64,000 bases of DNA from Oopsacas minuta. Taxonomy: Eukaryota; Animalia; Porifera. How positions within the stretch are numbered: the first letter of the stretch is position 1; every line of letters starts with the position of its first letter. A program made the position numbers and the translations under genes. Below the pieces are notes generated by a model. It searched no databases. It saw nothing but the letters and a program-made list of their open reading frames with translations, and was not told where the DNA came from. Location: contig JAKMXF010000327.1 of the NCBI GenBank assembly GCA_024704765.1, forward strand, positions 141,360 through 205,359, in the 5' to 3' direction. Of this stretch, positions 1,118 to 61,581 are shown in pieces.

Positions 1118-3129
1118 CGTTGAATCTTTATTTTAGCTATTTTCTTTGAGAAGAAATTAAAGCATGGATTTGTAATACAATTTTAGCTACGATAATTACC
1201 TAAAACTGTTCTTTTCGTGTTAACTTCATGGATTTAACATTAAATATTAAAGTAAGAATGCAAAGTTAAGTGAGATTCGGTTGAAATCTGTGAAACTCAC
1301 TTCAGATCTCTGAGACTTGACAACTTTCTGGATCAACTTCTTCAATTGATCAATTCACTCTTAAATAGTTACTTTTATCTTGATAGTGAATTATATATTC
1401 CCAAATTGTCATCACATTATTAGAATTAAATTTAGTTCGATGATTCTTTAGAAATAGATTTCTATTAGTGCCATTTTTATGTGTAGTGTATTTGATGAAT
1501 TTCAGAACTGATTTCATCATTATCAGTGTCTTTCTTGTAATGCTCGACTGGCTTCTGATCCAATCAGTATACTAAACCAATTGTATGTATCTTGCATTAT
1601 ACAAGTAGACAACTACTATGTATAAACTAATTTTTCGAAATATAATACTAGTTTATAGCCGCTAGGGCATTTGTTTTGGTTATCTAGAAATATAATTATA
1701 CATATTTAATTCTTCCCTAAATCCCAGCTATTCTAGCTACCCGTGTATTGATACAAATTTTTATCTAATTTACATAAAATTATCCACAATTTCTTTAGCC
1801 ATTTTTAGACAGTGAATTTATACCCCTCACTGAATATAGAATGGATTCAATCAATCGATTTAGTCATCAGTTCATCCCTCTAATTACCAATTATTCCACC
1901 TTCACATTTATGAATGAGATCAATTTATATTCTGGAATTCGTGGTCAAATTCTTTAGTTCAAAGAGATCACTGATTTATACCTTCTGTCGAAGAAGACAA
2001 AACTGTTTGTGGCGTATGTCATTTGCTTTGAATGGCATTCTGACAATAATATTCTTTGTCTTTCAATGCTACTGAATTTGGATTGAAATTAAAAAATTAC
2101 ACCAAGTGATTCATTACGATCTATTATATGAAACCAATGCATTTGATAGATGTGAATTATTCAACATTGAGAAATTTCAAGAGTCATCTAGATTTATATA
2201 AATTGGTAAGAACTGTAGGTACTACTATTATCAAGTATCACATTAGTATAGTTTTGGTATTATTCTACTTTACATAATATTCTGATTTTATTTCGTGCCT
2301 GCTCGTTTTCCTCTGGCGCCTCTATTGTTCATTCTTTATTTTTTAGTTGGTGCCTAATTTCAGTTCCGAGCCGTCTTACTTTCACTGAATTCCATTATTT
2401 GTTTAGGCAAATACACATTTGAACTATATAATTATTAGGGGCTCTTTCATCAAATGGCTCAGAGAATACCTTCTCCATCCAACTTAGGTCAGTTCATATA
2501 TTATTTATTATATTTAATCATATTTACAAATATACCATTCGAATATCTTTATTGATTTCAGTACAATTACGCACTTTGATTTCATTGTACAAATAATCTA
2601 GTTTATCGGATGTGAAGACATCAACCAGAATATTAATTTGTTTTATTATTCTAAAATGGAGGGAAAATCATTTCAGTTTAGTTTTTGTTTGTAAGATTCT
2701 TTTCTAACAAATCATTCAATATATTTACTGCGAAATTATTTATTTTTCCTTTATTTATAATTACTTTTCAATCTACAATGAATATGAAAACATGTCATCT
2801 CGATTTATTTGTTATACTGACCCAAATTGTCCATGGTTAGCATTCACCTGCGGCCTTCTAAACCTAAATCATACACAACAAATCTTTTACTTTGATTTGA
2901 GATAGTCTAATTGTTTGTTTCATTTTCTGAGCATATAATTGCTACCTGTCCCGATTTAGTGTGACGTCTCTCATTATTTAACATTTGCTGTGTGAAGCTC
3001 TTCAGTTATGTATTGCTACCTTTGTAATTGGGTTCGCTGAAATCGAATATAGCTGAATTTTCGTCGCCGGACCATTAGCATGATAGACTATTGCAAATGT
3101 TTTGATTATTTCTCTTCATTTATGAAGGA

Positions 3130-3540
3130 AACATATATTTTATTCTGAAATATCGCTAGAAGATAAAATTATGAGCTAATGCCCCTTACGTAGACTATCA
3201 CATCACGATTTTCTGGCTAGTAATTATGTCAATACTTGTGAGGAATCGATGAGATATTAAATAGGTATATCCGCATCCCCTCGCAAGACTTTTCCCCATC
3301 TCATTAGAGTCGGCATAAAGTACTTTTTGAAAGGCAATTCTATTGGGACGAGATCGGAGTTATTTTACAAATTTTTATGTTATGGAGGTTCTAGTGCACA
3401 CGAAACCTCCCACAACATAAATATTTGTAAAACAGACTCGGATCTCATCCCAATAGAATTGTCTTTCAATAAATAAGATAATACAGAACCTTATTACAGG
3501 CGACGGAAAATCCAGCAATGAAAATTCCTTCAACGGCTGA
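3130..3540. mobile_element. Interspersed repeat with an internal ~140-bp hairpin; related copies at ~10050-10200 and, inverted, ~18150-18600
   Basis: Inverted arms of ~60 bp at 3328-3468 (TGAAAGGCAATTCTATTGGGACGAGATCGGAGT / ACTCGGATCTCATCCCAATAGAATTGTCTTTCA). 3140-3280 matches the reverse complement of 18365-18570. Confidence 0.75.
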
Positions 3541-3712
3541 AATCAATGGTTTCGTTATGTGACTTGAGTCACAATTTATTGATAATGTAATTAAATATTT
3601 ACATATAATGCTTCATAATTAATTGAATGCGAGTAGTACATTACAATACCTTTTAGTACCAACCTATATGGGAAATTTTGCTAATATTAGTACTTGAATT
3701 CACAACATACTA

Positions 3713-3900
3713 CAGTGGAACCTCCTCAATCTGAACACGGTGATACTAATTAATTAACTGATAAGATGAACAAATAATTGCACATTCCAGGTCCTTACGA
3801 TGGATATCCAATTGGTGTTAACCTCCGGTCAATATGAACTCCGGATAAGGCGAACAAATTTGCTCGTCCGTTGGTGTTTGTATTAATGAGGTTCTACCCG
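3713..3900. mobile_element. Tc1/pogo-type MITE; partial related copy at ~505-583
   Basis: TA-flanked imperfect TIRs CAGTGGAACCTC / GAGGTTCTACCCG; internal CTCCGGATAAGGCGAACAAATTT shared with 524-546. Confidence 0.7.
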
Positions 3901-6066: not shown

Positions 6067-7469
6067 TATTTAGAAATCAGAAACTGTCGAAATATGTTAA
6101 TGAAATGAACAAACAGAGGGGTTTTAGCATCAACCTTTTAGGGTGCTGGCTCAAGTTCACACTGCTAGTCTGATTATTTTTATTGCACTACTTTTGGCTT
6201 TAGGGCTGCTCTATGCTTGAACAAATAAGCATAGCAATTTAATTATTGGCTAAAAGTTCATATGGAATGTCTTTTTAAATTTTTAATTGGTCATGATGAA
6301 CCAGTAATTGTAATTTGTTCAATATATAGATTACACTATTAACATAATGACATCAATTAGACAAGCGTAGATCATGCCTACGTATGCTATGTATTATCAT
6401 TACTACACAAATTGTAAAATGTATATGCGTAGCTGTATCTAGAATTGCATAGTGCAAACTGTGACATAGTATAATATTTATACTCTATTTTAACAACCTG
6501 AAAAAATAGAAATAGTATAGTAATTCTATTGAATGGACCACATTTCATATACTTCATTCATCGTCACACCTAGTAAGTCTTAATATACATTATCAATAAT
6601 ATTATGTCATTTACTCGTTATCACAGATTATCTATTTAGCTTTTGCCTTGTACATATGTGTGATCATTATCAAGCCTAATTGGGAATTGTACTTGACCAG
6701 TAGAAATTACTTATTTGATTGGTATTCATTCATTTCCAATCGATAGTTAAATTTGTGCTTACATTACATAGAAACTACGCTACTTTTCAATGAGCCATGA
6801 GTAAATACGGCGGACTCGTTCAAAGAAACTGTTATACGAAACTCCGGAAATACGTTTTCTACTCGGAATAAGTCCTAATAACCAAATGATATGCAATTAA
6901 TCTTAATTATTAACTGCAGGGAAGACACTACGTGTTAGCCCGGACCTAGATAAGCCCTTGGACTAGAGGACGTAGGGCGGACATCATTCATCGTCCACGC
7001 CATTAGGGCATCTCCTTATTGTTGCTGGAGTAAATTTGCATTTGAAATATAATCCCATAGCATTAATATACTGTTAATAGCATCAGTAAACTATGAAATC
7101 TGCCAACCCTGGACACGATAGATTGTTTTACATTTGTTTGTGACAGCGATAAAGAATTGGTTACTCATGCACAATTAGATCATTGAATGTAATCTTCAAT
7201 TATGGCATTTGAATTTGATTTATCTATATTTTCATTATTATGTGATCTTTCTTGTTGTTAGTATACTCCTGTTCATGCCTTTAATAACAGGCTGACCATA
7301 TGTCCTATTTTATCGGACTGCCCTCTTTATTGCTGCCTGTCATTTTTTTTCTATTCTGTCCTTATATTTGCTTGTTGTCCTTTATAAAGGTTCTCAAACC
7401 GAGACGAACACTCAATAATTCGTATGCCTTTCTCGCATTAGAGCCTAGAATCTGCTTAACAAGTATATG

Positions 7470-7545
7470 CAGTAAAACTCGGATAAGACATACCCTCTCG
7501 GGAATCAAAGATTTGTACGTACTAATTACTAGCCGAATTCTACTG
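7470..7545. mobile_element. Mini pogo-type MITE (76 bp)
   Basis: CAGTAAAACTCGGATAAG ... TAGCCGAATTCTACTG|TA; the same family end occurs at ~25785. Confidence 0.65.
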
Positions 7546-7594
7546 TAAATTCTTTGCAGAGAATTTCAGACAATTCAGAGCGTAAAAATGTTTC

Positions 7595-7684
7595 ATATGA
7601 TATATGATATATGATATATGATATATGATATATGATGTTTGATGTTTGATGTTTGATGTTTGATGTTTGATGTTTGATGTTTGA
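7595..7684. repeat. Compound 7-mer microsatellite (TGATATA)n switching to (TGATGTT)n
   Basis: About 6 units of TGATATA followed in phase by about 7 units of TGATGTT. Confidence 0.95.
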
Positions 7685-8746
7685 TTCATATTTTATGTGA
7701 ATTTTACTGAAATTTCGTCACAATTTGACCAATAGTATCTGTGATTATTTAATATCCAATTTTGTTGGTATTATCTTTACGTAATTCTAGAACATCCCAG
7801 TTGATATTTGATATCTATCTGACGATAGATAATTGTTACAATAGGGTTATTTCATACATTTTCTTAAAATAATACCTCTATTAATAAAGCAAAATATTGA
7901 TAGTTATATAAGATGACCAGAAGTGCTTTCGCAAAAAACCCTTCTAGTCATCCTATATAGTCCAGGTTACCTGGACTGGCTGGACAGAATCCTAGAAAAA
8001 CTGGATATCCCATTTGAGAATTTATGTCGGTATTTCTGTAAGCTATGTAATAGTAACAATTATGAATACATGTATTGTTAACGTACTATATGTTGTGAAG
8101 CAATCTAACCAAAACCCCGCCAAAATGATGAAAATTGAATCACGCGTTTTACCTAGGTGAAGAAACTGGACACAGCCAAAATTGACCACAAAAACCTGCA
8201 CTGTCTAGGGAAAATGAACTATTGTCACCCTATAGCTATAGTAATTGTATAGTCTATAAATGAAAATTAATTATCATTCAATGTCCTTTTTTTAAGAATG
8301 AGGAGATGGTCACTCTGCTTTAAATTACTACTCTTCTCTTCATGATGGTAAACAATTATAAAGTATTCACTTCTATCAATTCCTATTAGTTTTTATTACT
8401 TTGATAATACAATACTATCATAAAGCTAGTATTCAATTAATGACCCTTCTGCTGATTACATTTTCACACTTATTTGTTAAATTAACTTTAATAAAGCGGA
8501 CTTTTGCGTCATTAATGCAATAATGAAGTCTGATGGGTTCATTTCGCTCCTATGTGTGAACCATTAGGCCATGTAGATATTGCCTAAACACTATTTATTA
8601 ACTATTATTCAGTTTAACTAGGTAAAGCTAGAAATGTTTGGTCATTATTTTCACAGTTAAATTTCATAATGCAACAAATCTCAAAAGGTAAGAATATTCA
8701 TTGTATGTTGAAATATTGATTAATTAAAAACACTAAAATCATATAT

Positions 8747-51879: not shown

Positions 51880-52326
51880 ATCCAACTATTATCAGTTTGA
51901 AATAACGTCATCTGTTTGGTTAAGAGGGCAATTTTTTGTTCAAATGAACCATTTGTAAAAGCCCTGATAAACGATCACTTGTGCGTCTTCGAGTCCAGAA
52001 TAAATATCAAGTGATCTAAGGTTGTTTATGCATAAAATATAAATTTTCTAATTATAAAGTTGTCACGTTATTGAGTTATACTAGATACCCTGGGTGGCAC
52101 ATTTTGGACTATATCCACTTTTAACTCGATTGTCGCGAGAGTTTTAGTCAAACCAACCAATATAATATATACACAATTTCCCATACCCTTGTAATGCATG
52201 TGGATATGATTTCGTTAATCGGTGTGACGCAATCCTGAATATGCCCATATTTCGTCATGATTAAGATTACGCAATACTACTTCATGATATCTTCTGAAAT
52301 AAAATACAAGGATCTGGGAAGTTGGG
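51880..52326. mobile_element. Left part of a foldback MITE that hosts the NOF-type MULE; continues at 59791-59862
   Basis: Aligns with the 37700-38390 family, and the alignment resumes immediately after the second TSD copy at 59790. Confidence 0.75.
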
Positions 52327-52930
52327 ACGAGTGTTATCTTAGCAGCCGATTCAAATCCCCACTCAAACACCTTTTTCTCAAAAAGTATGAGTTCTATTTT
52401 GAAAAGAACCATATCAGTGTCAAGAAGAAAGTTGGTACATTTCATATCATCACTCATAATCGCCAAATTTTGCATGATGAGTAAGCAATTTTGCATTACA
52501 TTTTGGTCGAGGTTTTTTATTAATATCTCCTGAAATAATTGTGATAATAACTTATCATTTTAATCATTTTTACATCTCACTTGGTACATTGTGTATATCC
52601 AATTTGAAACTAATATAATTATTTTTGAAAAAGTTATGAACGCCCGGATTTTACATAGGAATTACATATACGATCAGTTTGTACTATCAATAATGAAGTA
52701 TGTATGACATTACAGTGTACGTAAATTTTGATGAGTATTTAGTATCATTTACAATTCTATAGTTCCAATTCTATTGTGGTTTTAGATAATAATTAGAAGA
52801 TATTTGAAATATAATAAATAACACAACACCATTGTCATGACAGTTATCATACATTATACAAAACATTACTTTTTGAATAGAAAAGAGTAAACAAATCGAA
52901 AAGTATTACAAGATACTAATTAACCAGATA

Positions 52931-54266
52931 CAGGGGCATTCAATATATACTAATCATCCTATATTTTTAATGTAATAGCAGTTCTAAGCTTGTATTTCTC
53001 AGTGCAATTATATAGAACCATATTTCAACTTTCTAACAAAACTTAGAGAGAGTTGATCACTTAATTATTTCCTAAGTTTCAGTTATTTTTAGAAACCTAC
53101 ATGTTCTCCTTTACATTTTTCATGGGTCCTTGTCCAAATTTTTCGGAACTTGAACAACGAACGTACATCAAATTTCGCACCATTCTCGAAATCTCTCCAA
53201 AGTCTATTCATGACGAGTTGGCAACGATATGTGGAGAAGATACTTTATCGTATTCAACTGTCAGAAGGTGGGTGAGCCAATTTAGGGAAGGTAGGACCTC
53301 TGTCCAAGACGCCCCTCGTCCTGGAGCACCAAAACTGGCGACCAACAATGACAAATTGAGTGAAGTAAAGGAATATGTCGCGTCTTTTCCGCATTCTTCG
53401 GTTGAGGAGGTAGCTAACTATGTTGGCATTTCAACGGGAAGTGCACACATAATTCTGAAGGCGGATTTAGAACTGAGGAAGGTCCAAGTGCGATGGGTAC
53501 CACATTGCTTAACTTTTCCACAAAAGGCCGCGAGACTCCAAATGGCTAAGGAAAACCTTGAAATTTATGAAGGAAGTGACCCTAGGCGGTTATTAGAGAT
53601 AGTAACAGGAGATGAAACATGGATACAATTCAAACCACTGATCAGAAAGCAAGATGGCACGGTATGGCTAAAGAAGGGAGAGGTTCCTCCAGCTGTTTGT
53701 GTGTCCGACTTCCGTGACCCGAAGGTCTTGTACTGCATATTTTTCGATGGCCCAGGTCCTGTAGCCCAAATCCCTGTTCCAAAAGGTCAGACACTCACAG
53801 GACAATTTTACGCAGATGTGGTGTTGCCTGAGGTCGAAAAACATTATCTTAAGCGTCGTCCAAAGACCGGAACTCGTGGTCTCAAAATTTTCCACGATGA
53901 TGCTAAACCGCATAAATCTTTGGCTGTAAGGCAAAAAATTAAAGATATGGGTATGCACGAAGTTCCACATCCACCTTACTCCCCTGATATAGCCCCATGT
54001 GACTTCTGGCTGTTTAGAAAACTCAAAGATAACGTCTCCGGATGCGAATTTGAGGATCGGCTCAGCCTCAGTCGGGCAATTTACAGATGCCTTGAAGTCA
54101 TTCCCAAGGATGAGTACAGAAAGACAGTTGAAAATTGGATTAAAAGGCTAAATTCAGTTGTAGCGTATAAAGGAGACTACTTTGAACATTCATAGCAAAA
54201 ACTACCAACTTTACACAAGTATTTATAGTTTTAGATGGTATGATTAGTATTTATTGAATGCCCCTG
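52931..54266 (+). mobile_element. Mariner (DD34D) element, full length, nested inside the NOF-type MULE
   Basis: 27-bp TIRs CAGGGGCATTCAATA(T/A)ATACTAATCAT (1 mismatch) and TA TSD at 52929-52930 and 54267-54268. Confidence 0.96.
53101..54195 (+). CDS. Mariner transposase, uninterrupted ORF (364 aa; true start may be the second Met, 53122)
   Basis: EQRTYIKF, WVPH, TGDETW, HDDAKPH and YSPDIAPCDF; 34 residues between the 2nd and 3rd Asp. Confidence 0.93.
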   Translation: MFSFTFFMGPCPNFSELEQRTYIKFRTILEISPKSIHDELATICGEDTLSYSTVRRWVSQFREGRTSVQDAPRPGAPKLATNNDKLSEVKEYVASFPHSSVEEVANYVGISTGSAHIILKADLELRKVQVRWVPHCLTFPQKAARLQMAKENLEIYEGSDPRRLLEIVTGDETWIQFKPLIRKQDGTVWLKKGEVPPAVCVSDFRDPKVLYCIFFDGPGPVAQIPVPKGQTLTGQFYADVVLPEVEKHYLKRRPKTGTRGLKIFHDDAKPHKSLAVRQKIKDMGMHEVPHPPYSPDIAPCDFWLFRKLKDNVSGCEFEDRLSLSRAIYRCLEVIPKDEYRKTVENWIKRLNSVVAYKGDYFEHS

Positions 54267-55058
54267 TATTATAGTTTGTCTGTCTATCTTTTCTGTATTG
54301 AACTGATTGATGAACTAATGAGAAATACTGATCGAATTTCCCTTGTCTATTAGAACAGGCTAAACCTAAAACAGGTGGTACTATTTATGCAAAATCTTTA
54401 CAGCTATATAAGGAAGATTAACAAATGTCTTGATCAGATAAGATTTGAAGAGACGATCAACACTTCGATTTGTAATTATCAATGCCAGAATGGTAAGAGA
54501 ATCGAGAGTTAACTCCAGGACATGGGTCTCCAAATGAATGCTCCAAAAATAGATAATAACTTCTTTCTGATTCAAATTTGTACAAATTATAAAATAAATG
54601 TTAGTAAGAGAGATTTGCAGATATAATTCATAGATTGATTAAGATAATTGTAAGGATAAGAATATAGATTTTCATGTTCATTGTTTACTTTACTATGAAT
54701 ATATCTCCCAGAACTTTACATATTGGTGTTGTGTTAGTTGCCAAATCCTGCGTAATATAATCCAGCTTTTAAACGTATCTTGGTTAGAGGAAAGGTCATA
54801 AAATAGTTCCATATAATCCAACTGTCGATACATATACGTATATACATACATTTGTGATTTTTGTCGCAATCAATTTACATATTTAGATGAGATCTCACAA
54901 AATATTCAAGATTCATTTATACAAAATATTTATTGATAGAATTACTCACAAAATATTCAAGTTCCATTTATACAAAATATTTATTGTTTCACTAATAATT
55001 TTGTTGGTAAATATATAATTTTCGCTGCCATAAATTGAAACCAATGATTGGGTTGCTT

Positions 55059-58000
55059 TTAATAATAAATTAGAGATAGTATGGGCTGGTAATGATTACT
55101 TAAATTCTGAATATATAAACCATTTGAAGTTGGCTCCTTTAATAATTGATCAAAACTTGATCCATTACCTGAAAACCCAGCCCAACGAGTTCCAGGAGCC
55201 CAAAAACACCCAAATATCTATATTAAATAACAACGAAGTTGCAAATACCTCTAAGTCAGTAGCCCATTTCCCAACCATATTCATCCCTATTTTATTTACC
55301 CAATCCTGAATATTCCTAAAATTACTTTGAGTATAAACATACTTAGTATACAAAAACGCATTACAACTCGCACTTAATTTACCAACCATGTTTTCAACGA
55401 TAATTTCCCGTAATTCTTATGATAGGGTTTACTACCTGTTATTAGATAAGAAATTGTAGAAAAATAACAGTTTCCATCACCTGATATTGTTTCTGTTGTT
55501 CCGGGATTATATACATATAATCCTTCACCATTATCAATTAAATTATCTAAAGAATAGACAATCTGATTACTATAATGTAGTTTCCATTTCTTACAGGTAG
55601 CAATTTGCCATTCAACGTGTGGTGGACGAAAGCTTGGTATAATATATCGTATTATACTTGACTCTACCAATTCTTCATCAGTAATTATTGACGCAGTCTT
55701 AATTTCTGGTGATTTGCAAATCATACGTAAAGTAGACAACTTCTGACGCTTAATAGGGATTAATTTATCTTTTACGATAGTTTTATCTCTATTAAATTGA
55801 GGAAATTCATATGTTTTCGACTTCAAATAGCCACAATGCTGTTTCTTTTTCCTGGACCATTCTTCATTACATTTTTCTTCTGAAATATCTCTTATTCGCT
55901 TACGACCTTTAAAAAATTTATCAGCTCTGGGATGAAAAGTAAAATTGAAAGCGGAAATTCTACTAGTTATACCGGGATATAATACTCTAATGAAATCTCC
56001 AGGCCTCAAATTTGATTTCGAATTCAAAATATCTAATTTAACTATACGCATCCAGTTCTCTACAATGGCGTTACTATAATACGAATAATTATTTCCAACT
56101 GAAAGACTGTGGGGGCCTAATATAATACCACTCCATAATGGCAGAATAGGTAAGTAGTAAGTTAAAATATATTCTATAAGGCTAGGATAATAGCAAGGAT
56201 TCGAATCAAATGTTTTGGTGTGATTATTGTTGATAGCATTTTCACATTGTTTACTTATATATGCAAAATGTTTACCAAAGGGAGATCTGTCTCTTAGGGT
56301 CTTACCGTCCTTAATATCGATGGGATCATTATCACAATCCTCATCATATAAACTTTCATTTGTATCATCTAAATCAGAATAACTGTCACTAATATAATAC
56401 TCTAATGTCTTAATATTGCTTAATACATGTTCATTCATATATTTACTCTTAAACACATAACACAAGGAAGTAAACACACAACTTATTTGAGTAATATTAG
56501 TACAACGCACCAGATATCCAAAGGAATACAAAAACAACTTTCTCACTTCTTTTTTTAACTTAAATTTCCTATTAATGTGAAAGCCAATACCATGCATTAT
56601 ATGGGCAGAACATAAATGGAGAATCAATTTTAATTCTAGTTCCTGATTGGCAGAATTTGTATCTACTCTATTCCAACATTTATCAAGATATGTATCGATG
56701 TCACATTTAAGAAAAGCATTACACACACTATGAATTAACGCCCAGCTGAAATCTATCTCAACTTGTCCTATGTTAATATTATAACCTAATATTTTCTTTG
56801 TATCAAGATACCATTTGTGTAGAAAATAACTAATCTCAGCGCTAGTATGACCAGAACTGATCATCTCTGCCAGAGGTACGGGACTGGTAGAACAAGTTGG
56901 ATGTTGTGCTGTGAGAGCATAATAAAATACTTTGTGCTGGGAAGGTTCAATCTTTCGAATGATTGAGCCAGTAGCATCTAAGTGAAGAATTATGCTTTTA
57001 TCTTTAAAACATTTTAATATTTTAATTTGGTCTTCAGTATATAAATGAATAATAAAGGGGTTATGTCCTAATGACTGAATGTACCCTCTAACATTACTAC
57101 CCACTATAACATTCCGATAATACTGTTGTAAACTAATCAATTCACTCCAATTATCATTAGAGAACCTCTGTAAACTTGACAATCAAATTTTGCCTTCCTT
57201 AATACAGCAGCGCTTTTAATTTTATTTAGATTGCCGAAATTAAGCCTAAATTTCTATTTTCTGTAGACTCGAATTGGTTATAGAAATATTTACTTACAGA
57301 TGTGTTTGCTATTTGTGTTGCTACTTTTAACCTAATAGAATTACACAATTTTCTTGCGTAAACAATATTATTATCTAAATGTTCATCAGATAAAATACCA
57401 GAAACTATGTAATTCACGATAATACAATCATTAGTGTGACTTTCGAGAGGATTCTTATTAATAATGAATGTAAAAGTAAAACAATTGCGAAATTTACACT
57501 CTGCATTTGCTCTAAAAAAACAAATGTTCAGTTTTCTACTTTTAGATTTGTTTATTTTGTGGTATTTAAAACAAAGTACACAATGAAATATTCCTTCCAA
57601 TTTGGAATTAAATAAGTTAGTCCAATCTTTTGAAAGTATAACACGATCACCCACGATTCTAGTAATATTTTCCCATTCTATAAAGTTAAGTAAAAAGCTA
57701 CCCGTACTTTGTTCCATAGTGCTGGATTCGTCAATGATTACCTCATTCAGAATATCACCATCACCTAGGGTTGGGACAAGTAACACATGATTAACGTTAT
57801 ATTTATCGATGACAACACTAGTTTCTGAGTGACCAATATCAAGTGCAAGTTTAGATAACATGTTTGGATGTGAATCAACTAACAACGGAATTTTTGAAGA
57901 GTTAACCGTGCCTAGTTTTTCTGATAGAGTTGAATGAAATGAAAATATTAGATCCATATTTTCTCGAATTGATAAAGCAAAGTTAAGAAATTCCTCGAGT

Positions 58001-58866
58001 TGTGCAACTGTGATAATGAGATAAGCACTTCCAAACAAATCCAAAATTCGACAGTTGATGTTGCCAACTAATATCCATGCTTCTAATAAGCAACTATCTC
58101 TCTTAACAAGCCTGAAGTTTCTTAGGTGCTCATATAAAAACTCATTAAATTTTTTGAACTCCTCATAGATTATCCCATTAATGAGCATGAATTCGCCACT
58201 AATGCGAGGACATTCTGACCCTAAAAATTTCAGTGCGTCTAACCATAGAAGATTATCACAATCAATGTACGTCCAAAAGAGGGTATCGGTGACCTCAGTC
58301 TGAGGAGGAGAAGAAGACAGGGTACTCTTCAAACTATATAGTTCAGGTTGTTCGCAACCAGATGCCAATAAGCCTAATAATTTGCTATTTGACACTTCCC
58401 GCTCCAAGCTATCTACACTAAAATCTGTGTCTAATTGACTACTACTAATATTACTAGGATCTAAACTATTAACATAAATACTATCTGAATCTAACCTGGT
58501 GCTAACGTGTTCTACAGCCAACTGGAATATATCAGTACCGGAATCGCTATTCAACTTACGGCTATTACCTTCCATACTTTGTTTTATATGATACTGAAAA
58601 TGATTGCGATTTAGTTTCCATTTTAAGTAGAGAGGAGCACGAGTGTTTGGCTTATTCTTATTGAATATGAGAATGGATAACTTTCCCCATACTGACTTCG
58701 CCCTTCGCTTGTCTCCGTTATCCAAGGCTGCCTTAAGTTTATCAAATCATTCTAGCCCAGTTGGGTAATTGCAGTTACAAATTGTTCCAGAGATGTCATG
58801 GTTGGAAGTAAGAACACAATCTATGCCAAAAAGAACGACTAATATTCTGGCACATTTTGCATATAA
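55059..58866 (-). pseudogene. NOF-like MULE transposase with C-terminal OTU-like cysteine protease domain (~1270 codons when reconstructed)
   Basis: LHLDATG, EIDFSWAL, LCSAH and IVENW (D-D-CxxH-E), then ISGDGNCYF...WATDLEVFATSLLFNIDIWVF...LYIQNLSNHYQPI. Disrupted by TGA at 58747-58749 and four 1-bp indels (~57240, ~57181, ~55414, ~55175); allowing for these gives 3810 nt, a multiple of 3. Confidence 0.82.
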
Positions 58867-59862
58867 CTACAGTTAACTCTCCTTATATCGGAAACAAGGA
58901 ACCGCAATAATCACTTCTATATACGCGGATTTCAATATAACCGATGACATTTATGTTTTTTAACGATTTGTGACTATATTTGTATAATCTCAGACTTCGA
59001 TATAGCGAGGATTTCTAATTATCCATGTTCGATATACCGGGAGTTGACTGTGTAACATTACAAAATTAATTAAGAAAGATACTCACATGATTGAAATGAA
59101 ATGAATTTAGTAGGACGGTTCTGTGAGGAAAATTTGTGGAAGAAATGAAGTTGAAATAAAATAAAGTTGAAGAATATCAAAAGTATTAAGGTTGTGAAAA
59201 ACGAAATAAATCAATTACAGTGTTACAAATGCTTGTTGATTGATATTACATTCTTAATTTAATACTAAGTTCAAAAATCTAAACTGACATAACTGGTCCT
59301 AATAATTGAGAAGGAATACATTTGACCTCAAGAATTTAGTCATCATAAGTAAATTTACACTAAGAATATTCAAGTAATCAATACATAGCTACAAAGCATA
59401 CAAATCATCAAGCAAAAACTGGTCGTCTATGTAATTCCTATGTAAAGTTCGGGCGTTCATAACTATTTCAAAAATAATTATTTTAATTTCAAATTGGATA
59501 TACACAATGTACCAAGTGAGATGTAAAAATGATTAAAATGATAAGTTATTATCACAATTATTTCAGGAGATATTAATAAAAAACCTCGACCAAAATGTAA
59601 TGCAAAATTGCTTACTCATCATGCAAAATTTGGCGATTATGAGTGATGATATGAAATGTACCAACTTTCTTCTTGACACTGATATGGTTCTTTTCAAAAT
59701 AGAACTCATACTTTTTGAGAAAAAGGTGTTTGAGTGGGGATTTGAATCGGCTGCTGAATCGGCTGCTAAGATAACACTCGTGAAGTTGGGGTATAGAACC
59801 TATTTGTTGGAGTGTTTTGACCATAATTCTAGGGACAATAGAGTTATAAGTGGATATTGCCC

Positions 59863-61581
59863 TAACGGAGTGCATGCATTTGTTAGAATTTCTACAGTTT
59901 GCACTTGTTAGAATGAGTTTTTCATATGTTTGCACTTGTTAGAATGGTTTTTTCGTATGTTTACATTTGTTAGAATGAGTTTTTCATATGTTTGTACTTG
60001 TTAGAAAGATGTTTGCATTTTAGAATGGGGCTTCTTACTAAATGAATATGAATGAGTTTAATAGACTGAAACACACCAATAACTTGAATTAGAATTAATT
60101 AATAAATATTTGAAATGTGTCCTCAATATCTGAGCGACACATAGGCCACGGCTGGCCTAGATCATTAATCCTCTGGCTGCATCTAGTACAACAACAAGCG
60201 TGCCTGCAAGGCATGAATATCCAAGTGGCTGTACAATTACCCAAACAAACAATGCATTTGTTTTCTTCTGTAGGCCCTTCATCTGCGGATTCGTTGTCCG
60301 AAAATTCGCTATCGCTCGAGGTCAGAGTGCAGTGAGAATATGAATTTCCAATAGTGTGGCTGATAGCTTCCAGGAACTGCCAAGGATTGTAATCTCCGTT
60401 ACTTAACTTTTGCTTCAAAGTACACCTACGTTCAAAGTTCATTAAATTATTCCTTTTGGGGGGCCTACTAATTTATTTGTCTTGGCACAAACGACCAACA
60501 TCATTGTCCACATCCTGAATTATGCTGTTTAGACTCAAATAAAACTCTATATCCTAGGATGACTTGTACGTATATTTGACTTGAGTTCTGAAGGGTAACT
60601 TTCGGAACCAGGTCGAAAGTGAGAAATATTTTGCGAAATGCTTTCCAGTATAGCTTGATATAGCTGTTGGTTTTTTCCGATCAATAAGCAGTGTATCGCA
60701 GGTAGAGTGTGCCTTCCCACTGAAATGAAAATAGTCCACAACTGATAAAATTGAATGGGTACAGTAAAGAATGTTCCATCGTATTGTATGTTGGTAATTT
60801 GTGATAAAAAATCTTTCATCGGCTCTGAAAAGAATACCACACCAAGTCCATTGCCAACAGAAACGCTAAATTTGTAATACTTCCCGAAGTTTGTAGTTGT
60901 TATCACTAAATTCCAAAGCTGTCTGAGAGATCTTAGGTTCTAGAGTTTTTCTCGCTCGAAACATGGTTGATTCGCAATCGGAAAAAGATATTTCACATCC
61001 CCGTGGATCATCTCTTGTCACATCATCAAAAACCTCCTGGAGATTCCTTTGCGAGTTTCTTGCAACTATCCTACATTTTGTTTTGAGAGCGAATAATTCC
61101 GGTTTTACGCCTCACAGTCATGATTATGCGAATTTATGGGAGTAAACAGATCTCTTTCACGATTGACTTTACATCTTCCTTTGCAACCACCTCTGAATAA
61201 AGCACACCTTAGGTAAACAAAATTGACATTTGATTTAGAAAGAATGTATTTGTTTCCATCTGACGTAGTGAAAACCTTTCCAACAGTACGTTTGTATTCC
61301 TCCAATGTATATTCCATCAAATTAATTAGTTGTACGTAAATATATACCAGAGACAAAAAAGGTTATTAAATACGATTCAGATGGGAAACTTGTTTGGTTC
61401 CTCCAGAAAGATCAAATTCAGTGACAAACAACAATATTTTAGGCTGATTTGATGAAGGCGTTGGAGTTGTGCATTCAACACTACATCATGAATGAACCAT
61501 TCTAACAAATGCAAACATATGAAAAACTCATTCTAACAAGTGCAAACTGTAGAAATTCTAACAAATGCTGCCCTCCATTTA
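59863..61581 (-). mobile_element. Degenerate MULE: FLYWCH-like N-terminus, MULE core, C-terminal RING finger
   Basis: Inverted ends built from ~30-bp CA(C/T)TTGTTAGAAT subrepeats (59876-60028; 61497-61568). ORF pieces: 61105-61356 (YLRC...CKGRC...HNH), 60547-60906 (YDGTFFTVPIQFYQLWTI) and 60095-60442 (CIVC...FMPCRHACCCTRC...WPMCR). No TSD found. Confidence 0.8.

Follow-up and report, generated by a model that had tools for sequence, protein, structure and literature searches.

A transposon whose transposase is fused to a predicted cysteine-protease domain of the ovarian tumor (OTU) type is present in the genome of Oopsacas minuta, a hexactinellid glass sponge (PMC10542158). The element is about 7.5 kb long and occupies positions 52327-59781 of the window analysed here, which is the 64,000-nucleotide stretch at positions 141,360 to 205,359 of contig JAKMXF010000327.1 (assembly GCA_024704765.1). 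Structural predictions, together with the ends of the element, support its placement as a cut-and-paste DNA transposon in the NOF/Rehavkus-like branch of the Mutator superfamily (Mutator-like elements, MULEs). The occurrence of OTU domains in Ginger1 elements and Helitrons, and of Ulp1 proteases in MULEs, is already known; it is the pairing of a MULE with an OTU domain that is new with respect to the literature searched. The general reading developed below, including this classification, is that the OTU domain of a NOF/Rehavkus-like MULE is an active isopeptidase that acts in cis or at the site of transposition. This reading is considered probable, with much lower confidence attached to any specific substrate.

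The transposase core and its placement

The predicted protein consists, in order, of an N-terminal motif, a Cys/His-rich region, a DDE core that includes a CxxH motif and a helical insertion, a linker of ~120 residues, and the C-terminal OTU domain. An exhaustive HMMER search with the 602-amino acid (aa) piece of the reading frame that contains the core found 2,021 relatives at E <= 0.001, many of them 800-1,500 aa in length, with named sources that include Mytilus, Holothuria, Brachionus, several fishes, Amphibalanus, Mercenaria, and Actinia. Across 45 aligned relatives, residues D144, C191, H194, P348, N371, and E375 are invariant and D69 is nearly so. The resulting D...D...CxxH...E layout corresponds to the DATG, DFSWA, CxxH, and E motifs, the CxxH being located between the second D and the E.

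An AlphaFold model of the 602-aa core has a pLDDT above 90 for most of residues 10-265 and 300-425, and predicts an RNase H-like sheet in which a helical insertion precedes the E. Among reviewed (Swiss-Prot) entries of the AlphaFold database, the best structural match to this model is P16320, the 120.7 kDa protein of the Drosophila NOF-FB element (E 4.3e-20), which is ahead of the second match (E 3.5e-6) by fourteen orders of magnitude. Next come K. lactis ALPHA3, FHY3, FAR1, FRS proteins, and ZSWIM1/3/9, all of which are MULE-derived, followed by transposases of the IS256 family. Solved structures in the PDB gave weak matches throughout, with the IS256-family ISCth4 transposase first, then RAG1, the P element, Hermes, and Transib. 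A Pfam scan of the two large open reading frames (ORFs) of the window found no transposase match, and a phmmer search against PDB sequences returned nothing.

The assignment to NOF-type Mutator elements is thus based on the structural matches in combination with a 9-bp target site duplication (TSD) and long terminal inverted repeats (TIRs). With respect to MULEs in general, the 9-bp TSD falls within the range of 8-11 bp, the TIRs are long (359 and 371 bp, at least 97% matching), and the DDE core is related to MURA and IS256 and has the C/DxxH motif. With respect to the NOF branch, the NOF protein is the closest characterised protein by structural match. An Atlas feature search gave MULE clusters at 0.81-0.86, which is a lead only. 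The relatives show the NOF/Rehavkus-like branch to be large and widespread in Metazoa, with members of the family in sponge, rotifer, mollusc, cnidarian, echinoderm, barnacle, and fish.

The C-terminal OTU domain

Identification of the tail as an OTU domain is supported by intact relatives and by a model of one of them. Pfam scores for the OTU domain (PF02338) in intact relatives are 28.6, 38.9, and 40.6 bits, above the gathering score of 23.3. The three OTU pieces of the window are collinear with the relatives, and when they were read through with X at the two breaks and compared with a profile built from intact relatives only, positions 8-161 of 172 were matched with an E of 1.2e-66. The closest intact OTU domain, that of relative P0231, is 60-67% identical to the window pieces. 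All of the top 50 PDB matches to the P0231 model (pTM 0.79) are OTU deubiquitinases or deISGylases, among them OTUD3, OTUD1, nairovirus vOTUs, OTUD5, and A20, with target TM-scores that are mostly 0.5-0.7 and drop to ~0.3 for the longer A20 and Cezanne chains. The catalytic Cys lies in DGNC, an invariant motif, and no full-length member has lost the His of NH[YF]; both residues are kept in the window. When the OTU part was used as a query for OTU domains in host genes or in other transposons, only family members were returned, with no sequence link found.

That the domain is fused to the transposase, and is not a separate gene, is supported by relatives in which the core, linker, and OTU domain form a single unbroken ORF: P0163 (769 aa), P0160, P0175 (923 aa, with the upstream conserved region), and P0233 (1,018 aa). 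Two more relatives, P0244 and P0245, are proteins of 1,100 aa that are 99.6% identical to each other, are encoded on different large contigs, and have all four modules in a single ORF. The linker between core and OTU is poorly conserved and modelled with low confidence.

The OTU domain also appears to be maintained. Between subfamilies, the proportion of synonymous differences (pS) is saturated at 0.75-0.85 and the proportion of nonsynonymous differences (pN) is 0.15-0.46; owing to the saturation of dS, pN is set against pS in place of a dN/dS ratio. For the same pairs, pN of the OTU domain and of the core is 0.24 versus 0.25 in one case and 0.44 versus 0.42 in another. By this comparison, the OTU domain is under purifying selection as strong as that acting on the core, and a domain so constrained is unlike a passively carried fragment.

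An earlier note on this window, made from its letters alone, had listed the transposase and OTU motifs, assigned the element to NOF-type Mutator, and proposed an OTU fusion against a background of MULEs that carry Ulp1. The motifs are present (core: LDATG, EIDFSWA, LCSAH, and VENW; tail: GDGNC, WATDLEVFA, and NHY), and the ranking of structural matches to the core, with NOF-FB ahead of MULE-derived and IS256 proteins, agrees with the assignment. Its identification of the OTU domain is borne out by the Pfam scores of the relatives and by the P0231 fold, which matches OTUs only, and fusion by the single ORFs of P0163, P0175, P0233, and P0244. Ulp1 on MULEs had indeed been published in 2010 and earlier, as had OTU domains on transposons of other superfamilies (PMC2836005). 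Beyond what the note proposed, the fusion turns out to be one instance of a broader swap of Ulp1, UCH, and OTU at this position.

Termini, target site duplication, and mobility

Inverted arms of 345 nt with 97% complementarity were identified by a repeat finder at 52341-52685 and 59411-59755, and by alignment the TIRs extend to the termini at 52327 and 59781, giving lengths of 359 bp on the left and 371 bp on the right. Both tips start with ACGAGTGTTATCTTAGCAGCCGATTC. The outer ~290 bp of the two TIRs align as identical except for a 12-bp unit, AGCAGCCGATTC, with one copy on the left and two on the right. The element is flanked by the TSD GAAGTTGGG, in which 9 of 9 positions match; the chance of such a match at fixed positions is ~4e-6. 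TIRs of ~355 bp and a perfect 9-bp TSD were both claimed in the earlier note and were found. Its description of the element as complete applies to the structure and not to the gene, which has a stop codon and five frame breaks, with a mariner nested in the element; the single reconstructable frame that it described exists but has ~1,248 codons instead of ~1270.

Mobility is shown by three independent insertions. In addition to the window copy, locus L005 (O. minuta contig JAKMXF010000346.1) has 86-92% DNA identity, the same kind of TIRs, and its own 9-bp TSD (AGTTGCATT/AGTTACATT, 8 of 9 matching), and is without the mariner. Locus L006, from another assembly (ERZ25766962), has ~67-70% identity, ACGAGTGTTATC at its start and end, and the TSD ATAAAGATA on both sides (9 of 9). 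The family is multi-copy: in independent runs, summed word depths are in the hundreds to thousands, and a site may have as many as nine variant contigs. In the published genome analysis, DNA transposons make up 15.4% of the O. minuta genome and 1,296 'MULE-MuDR' fragments account for 0.93% of it (PMC10280926).

Several features of these copies can be added. The 12-bp unit sits a few bases inside the TIR tips, as AGCAGCCGATTC in the window (52340-52351 and 59743-59767) and as ATCAGCGGATTC in L006 (3990-4013 and 9782-9805); it is tandemly doubled in several copies and single in the left TIR of the window, and may be a binding site for the transposase. In L005 (9617-11634) the protein is 94% identical over core residues 1-357 and then ~56-76% identical through the OTU domain, a drop that suggests recombination between subfamilies. 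The neighbours of L006 (10554-11996 and 12801-15252) are a RAG1-RNase-H-like gene and THAP9/P-element-like genes, in a region rich in transposons. Locus L007, an intact 1,100-aa relative, has inverted arms (2883-3855 and 7248-7972) of at least 725 nt that are made of ~187-bp tandem subrepeats, a foldback-like arrangement that recalls FB elements. When its termini were looked for, the right one was found (ACGAGTG...) and the left one was not, so that L007 cannot be called a complete autonomous element; a canonical Pfam-MULE gene (246-1559) adjoins this copy. Two contigs of ERZ26869290 (L003 and L004), both short, each have two family copies head to head, as with P0163 (plus strand) and P0160 (minus strand), and these pairs are either real palindromes or artefacts of long-read assembly.

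Exchange of deconjugating enzymes at the C-terminus

The C-terminal position is occupied by different domains in different relatives. When 41 relatives were scanned with Pfam over what remains of the protein at the C-terminus, 14 had Ulp1, 5 PHD, 3 USP/UCH, and 2 OTU; with a local iterated profile, Ulp1 was detected in 29 of 231 sequences. Ulp1 is the commonest C-terminal domain among the relatives. The two OTU cases are proteins of Brachionus calyciflorus that are named 'OTU domain-containing protein' in UniProt, and the USP/UCH cases include clam and sea anemone. A tree of 112 cores was calculated by quick maximum likelihood, with SH-aLRT support only and a midpoint root, many of its rows being truncated gene models. 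The window belongs to a clade of 18 rows (itself included, the others being from ENA assemblies) with 100% support, in which an OTU domain is present in every row with a long enough tail, and a Ulp1 clade of barnacle and other sequences adjoins this OTU clade. The rotifer OTU pair is found in another well-supported group, again beside a Ulp1 clade, and the rotifer and sponge OTU domains are only ~20% identical.

Because OTU domains occur in two separate lineages, at least two entries into the transposase lineage, or at least two swaps with Ulp1, have to be assumed; this is a minimum estimate and not a count. Sister lineages have Ulp1 or USP/UCH at the same place, and the selected trait is therefore probably the presence of a deconjugating enzyme at the transposase C-terminus and not the OTU domain as such. 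A more far-reaching proposal, which we put forward tentatively and hold to be somewhat less probable than its opposite, is that Ulp1, USP/UCH, and OTU, which have unrelated folds, have been repeatedly recruited to this position and kept there under selection, and that the removal of ubiquitin or ubiquitin-like modifiers is an obligatory step of NOF-type Mutator transposition. Such a step would most plausibly represent a counter-defence against ubiquitin- or SUMO-dependent silencing or degradation of the transposase. If this proposal is true, the family constitutes a natural swap series for finding the shared substrate.

Reading frame and lesions of the window copy

Five minus-strand reading-frame pieces, collinear with intact relatives, contain the gene of the window: 58746-57229 (506 aa), a bridge of 22 codons in the third frame at 57253-57140, 57182-55377 (602 aa), 55416-55168 (83 aa), and 55217-55062 (52 aa). 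From the ATG at 58799 to the stop at 55061-55059 they amount to ~1,248 codons. The short stretch opened by this ATG resembles the N-terminus of relative P0123 and ends at the TAG at 58752-58754. As assembled, the gene has this TAG stop and five small deletions of 1-2 bp.

The lesions were compared with Logan contigs of four public runs placed on positions 55000-58800; rare variants drop out of such contigs. At 58752, all contigs read another letter, giving a Tyr codon instead of a stop. Extra letters are present in contigs at all five frame breaks, in nearly all covering contigs near 55416 and 55196, in about half or more at 57245 and 57180, and in ~40% behind 58743. The prevalent sequence of the family is open at all six lesion sites. 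An intron between the two large ORFs was also considered and was rejected on account of the 22-codon bridge in the third frame, two 1-bp differences from the contigs, and equal spacing in P0175.

The O. minuta assembly was made from corrected PacBio reads with Pilon polishing (PMC10280926), and it is possible, if doubtful, that the element is intact in the animal and that the six lesions are assembly errors in a repeat. Five of the six are 1-2-bp deletions, same-sample contigs have extra letters at each break, and in run X2 all covering contigs have them at four of the five breaks, with the exception of that near 58743. On the other side, one lesion is a substitution that creates a stop, and the window differs from all contigs at many further single letters, as expected if the contigs represent the family majority and drop the variant of the locus itself.

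Proposed role of the OTU domain and alternatives

Under the general reading given at the outset, the transposase would bind the long TIRs, cut with a 9-bp stagger, and reinsert the element. The tethered OTU domain would take ubiquitin or a ubiquitin-like modifier off the transposase itself, or off chromatin and repair proteins at the donor and target sites. Its action would keep ubiquitin-dependent degradation, silencing, or repair signalling of the host from aborting transposition.

Several points weigh against this reading. The substrate and role of the transposon-borne OTU domain are purely inferred, and a search of sequencing runs identified none as RNA. In the window itself, the 83-aa piece alone scores 13.3 bits against the Pfam OTU threshold of 23.3, the pieces being below it because the domain is split over three frames, and the OTU fold was predicted for the relative P0231 and not for the window copy. 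That copy is either disabled or misassembled at six places. Pfam MULE (PF10551) had no match in the window pieces, in seven relatives scanned in full, or among the precomputed domains of 54 relatives; the superfamily assignment consequently rests on fold, motifs, TSD, and TIRs, a PF10551 match being a criterion for detecting a MULE and not its definition.

The main competing explanation is that the OTU domain is a self-processing protease, comparable to the papain-like and OTU proteases of some RNA viruses, that cuts the ~1,250-aa product (in the linker, for example) to free the mature transposase, with deubiquitination being secondary or absent. The low-confidence, poorly conserved linker of ~120 residues would suit such a cut, and a shared cleavage role for Ulp1, UCH, and OTU is conceivable in that all three cleave after a C-terminal Gly-Gly-like tail. 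Self-processing is nevertheless judged unlikely: all top structural matches are deubiquitinases or deISGylases, and no ubiquitin-like or Gly-Gly cleavage motif was seen in the linker, where none was searched for.

Much less credible is the view that the domain is a fragment of a host gene captured passively in the manner of Pack-MULEs and devoid of any role. Although capture of host fragments is known for MULEs (PMC6446971), this OTU domain stands in frame at one and the same C-terminal location among subfamilies with core identities of only 35-67%, its catalytic residues are kept, it has a pN that is much lower than pS and equals the pN of the core, and other protease folds fill the same slot in sister lineages. 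Least probable of all is an immobile, domesticated host gene, that is, a ZSWIM/FHY3-like derivative fused to a host OTU. The names that annotators have given to copies ('hypothetical protein' or 'OTU domain-containing protein') would fit a host gene, but the long TIRs and perfect TSD, the several insertions with different TSDs, the many diverged copies in the read data, and the broken state of the window copy do not.

Ubiquitin and SUMO proteases carried by transposons have been on record since 2006-2010 and their function has never been tested, and to these the present family adds the pairing of MULE and OTU in a glass sponge, an early-branching animal. The family offers intact natural proteins of 1,100 aa as well as closely related transposases that differ mainly in their deconjugating enzyme, which makes the need of a transposase for a deubiquitinase directly testable; a yeast transposition assay has been established for the MULE Muta1 (PMC5499845). 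The Pfam MULE model misses this branch, with the result that its genes are annotated as 'hypothetical' or 'OTU domain-containing protein'.

Comparison with known transposons

FB elements have been placed in the Mutator superfamily (PMC4079207). The Drosophila NOF protein (P16320) resembles the window core in its DDE and CxxH layout, with 18% identity over 587 aligned columns, and this low identity indicates that the two belong to the same branch and not to the same family. The foldback arms of FB-NOF, built of subrepeats, resemble those of the relative L007, whereas the TIRs of the window element are plain repeats of 360 bp. The class name for the FB-NOF type in RepeatMasker/Dfam is 'MULE-NOF'.

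Rehavkus elements, which a 2019 review groups with MULEs by reference to Yuan and Wessler (PMC6446971), have a 9-bp TSD, TIRs of up to 400 bp, a single ORF, and a PHD finger. The window element shares the 9-bp TSD, long TIRs, and single ORF, and an N-terminal PHD finger is found in many relatives (including P0009, P0012, P0019, and P0215), although Pfam detected none in the 506-aa N-terminal piece of the window. Likened by description, the Rehavkus minisatellite located before the 3′ TIR contrasts with a repeat of only 24 bp x 3.4 in the window. Rehavkus was described in that review as rare and found only in insects and annelids (PMC6446971), a range that differs from that of the present family, which extends from sponge to fish.

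Ulp1 proteases have been reported on MULEs of Hydra, lancelet, and plants (PMC2836005). These elements (KAONASHI/KI-MULEs of Arabidopsis and MuDR-type elements of Hydra and lancelet) are, like the window element, of Mutator type with a cysteine isopeptidase of the ubiquitin-like system; Ulp1 acts on SUMO, whereas the OTU domain of the window has a different fold, the typical substrates of which are ubiquitin and ISG15. Ginger1 transposases carry a C-terminal OTU or Ulp1 domain but never both, as described by Bao, Kapitonov and Jurka, who also note OTU domains in animal Helitrons and a C19 ubiquitin hydrolase on an IS5-like transposase, and a role for the ubiquitin pathway in transposition or repair has been proposed (PMC2836005). 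Ginger1 and Helitrons thus resemble the window element in having an OTU domain on a transposon protein, and the either/or pattern of OTU and Ulp1 in Ginger1 is also seen in the present family. Their cores are different, Ginger1 having a Gypsy-integrase-type DDE domain with GPY/F and Helitrons a Rep/helicase, as against the MULE/IS256-like core of the window. Membership in Ginger1 itself was ruled out by that core, the absence of an integrase Pfam match, and the 9-bp TSD.

A literature search for MULE, MuDR, or Mutator-like elements in combination with OTU or ovarian tumor returned only the Ginger paper, which does not place OTU domains in MULEs; a prior entry in Repbase Reports or Dfam is possible. 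Neither OTU, Ulp1, nor a protease is mentioned in two surveys of MULEs (2019 and 2026) or in a DDE survey.

Feature coordinates and other observations

The positions of all features are collected in Table 1. The Cys/His-rich region on the 5′ side of the core is probably a DNA-binding domain; it has no Pfam or Atlas assignment, an Atlas search having given only meaningless matches at 0.74.

Table 1. Positions of features of the element in the window, with the basis for each
Feature	Position	Strand	Basis or detail
Left TSD copy, GAAGTTGGG	52318-52326		Direct reading; identical to 59782-59790
Left TIR, on the 3′ side of the gene, with one 12-bp unit AGCAGCCGATTC	52327-52685		Terminal motif also in L005 and L006
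Nested mariner-type transposon, 1.34 kb	52930-54267	+	TIRs of ~35 bp (91%) and TA duplication; in the 3′ non-coding part of the element, between left TIR and 3′ end of gene
Tandem repeat, 24 bp x 3.4, just 3′ of stop codon	54897-54981		Too short for a Rehavkus-type minisatellite
Transposase-OTU gene, single, ~1,248 codons	55059-58799	-	Collinear with intact 1,100-aa P0244
Predicted OTU cysteine-protease domain, in three frame pieces	55062-55562	-	Catalytic Cys 55467-55469 (GDGNC 55467-55481); catalytic His 55092-55094 (NHY 55089-55097)
Lesion 6, 2-bp frame break in OTU domain	55195-55198	-	Two extra letters in most contigs; L001 and L006 continuous here
Lesion 5, 1-bp frame break in OTU domain	55416-55417	-	Extra letter in every contig of X2, X3, and X5 that covers the site
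Predicted RNase H-like DDE core with helical insertion domain	55893-57182	-	D69 56976-56978; D144 56751-56753; C191/H194 56601-56612; E375 56058-56060
Lesions 3 and 4, two 1-bp frame breaks (57245, 57180) around the 22-codon bridge between the large ORFs	57180-57246	-	One extra contig letter at each
Cys/His-rich conserved region, 5′ of core	57259-57738	-	Residues 337-496 of the 506-aa piece match many relatives at the corresponding position (E 1e-8 to 1e-28)
N-terminus, ATG 58797-58799 and conserved SVWG...LY..W motif	58600-58799	-	Motif common to N-termini of P0019, P0022, P0058, P0123, and P0244
Lesions 1 and 2, TAG stop 58752-58754 and 1-bp frame break near 58743	58743-58754	-	Contig comparison
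Right TIR, on the 5′ side of the gene, with two 12-bp units	59411-59781		Repeat finder and alignment
Right TSD copy, GAAGTTGGG	59782-59790		Direct reading

The nested mariner has an uninterrupted ORF of 364 aa (53101-54195) with a Pfam HTH_48 match above threshold (a Mos1-type helix-turn-helix) and weak, partial matches to Transposase_1/DDE_3, and it is possibly still coding. L005 is contiguous across the mariner site and has no counterpart of it, which marks the mariner as a later insertion outside the structure of the family. ORFs of 93-107 aa in the TIRs (52215-52496 and 59600-59935) mirror each other as a product of the repeat itself and have no sign of being genes.

Outside the element, a minus-strand ORF of 115 aa at 60095-60442 has a C3HC4 RING finger at its end and no tblastn match to the NOF-type core. 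Directly adjoining the element on its right is a tandem array of 31 bp x 3.8 (59897-60014). The insertion is bracketed by a pair of 53-nt inverted repeats (52103-52155 and 59813-59865, 79%) whose arms would be ~190 bp apart without the element, so that the landing site appears to lie inside a small palindromic sequence resembling a miniature inverted-repeat transposable element.

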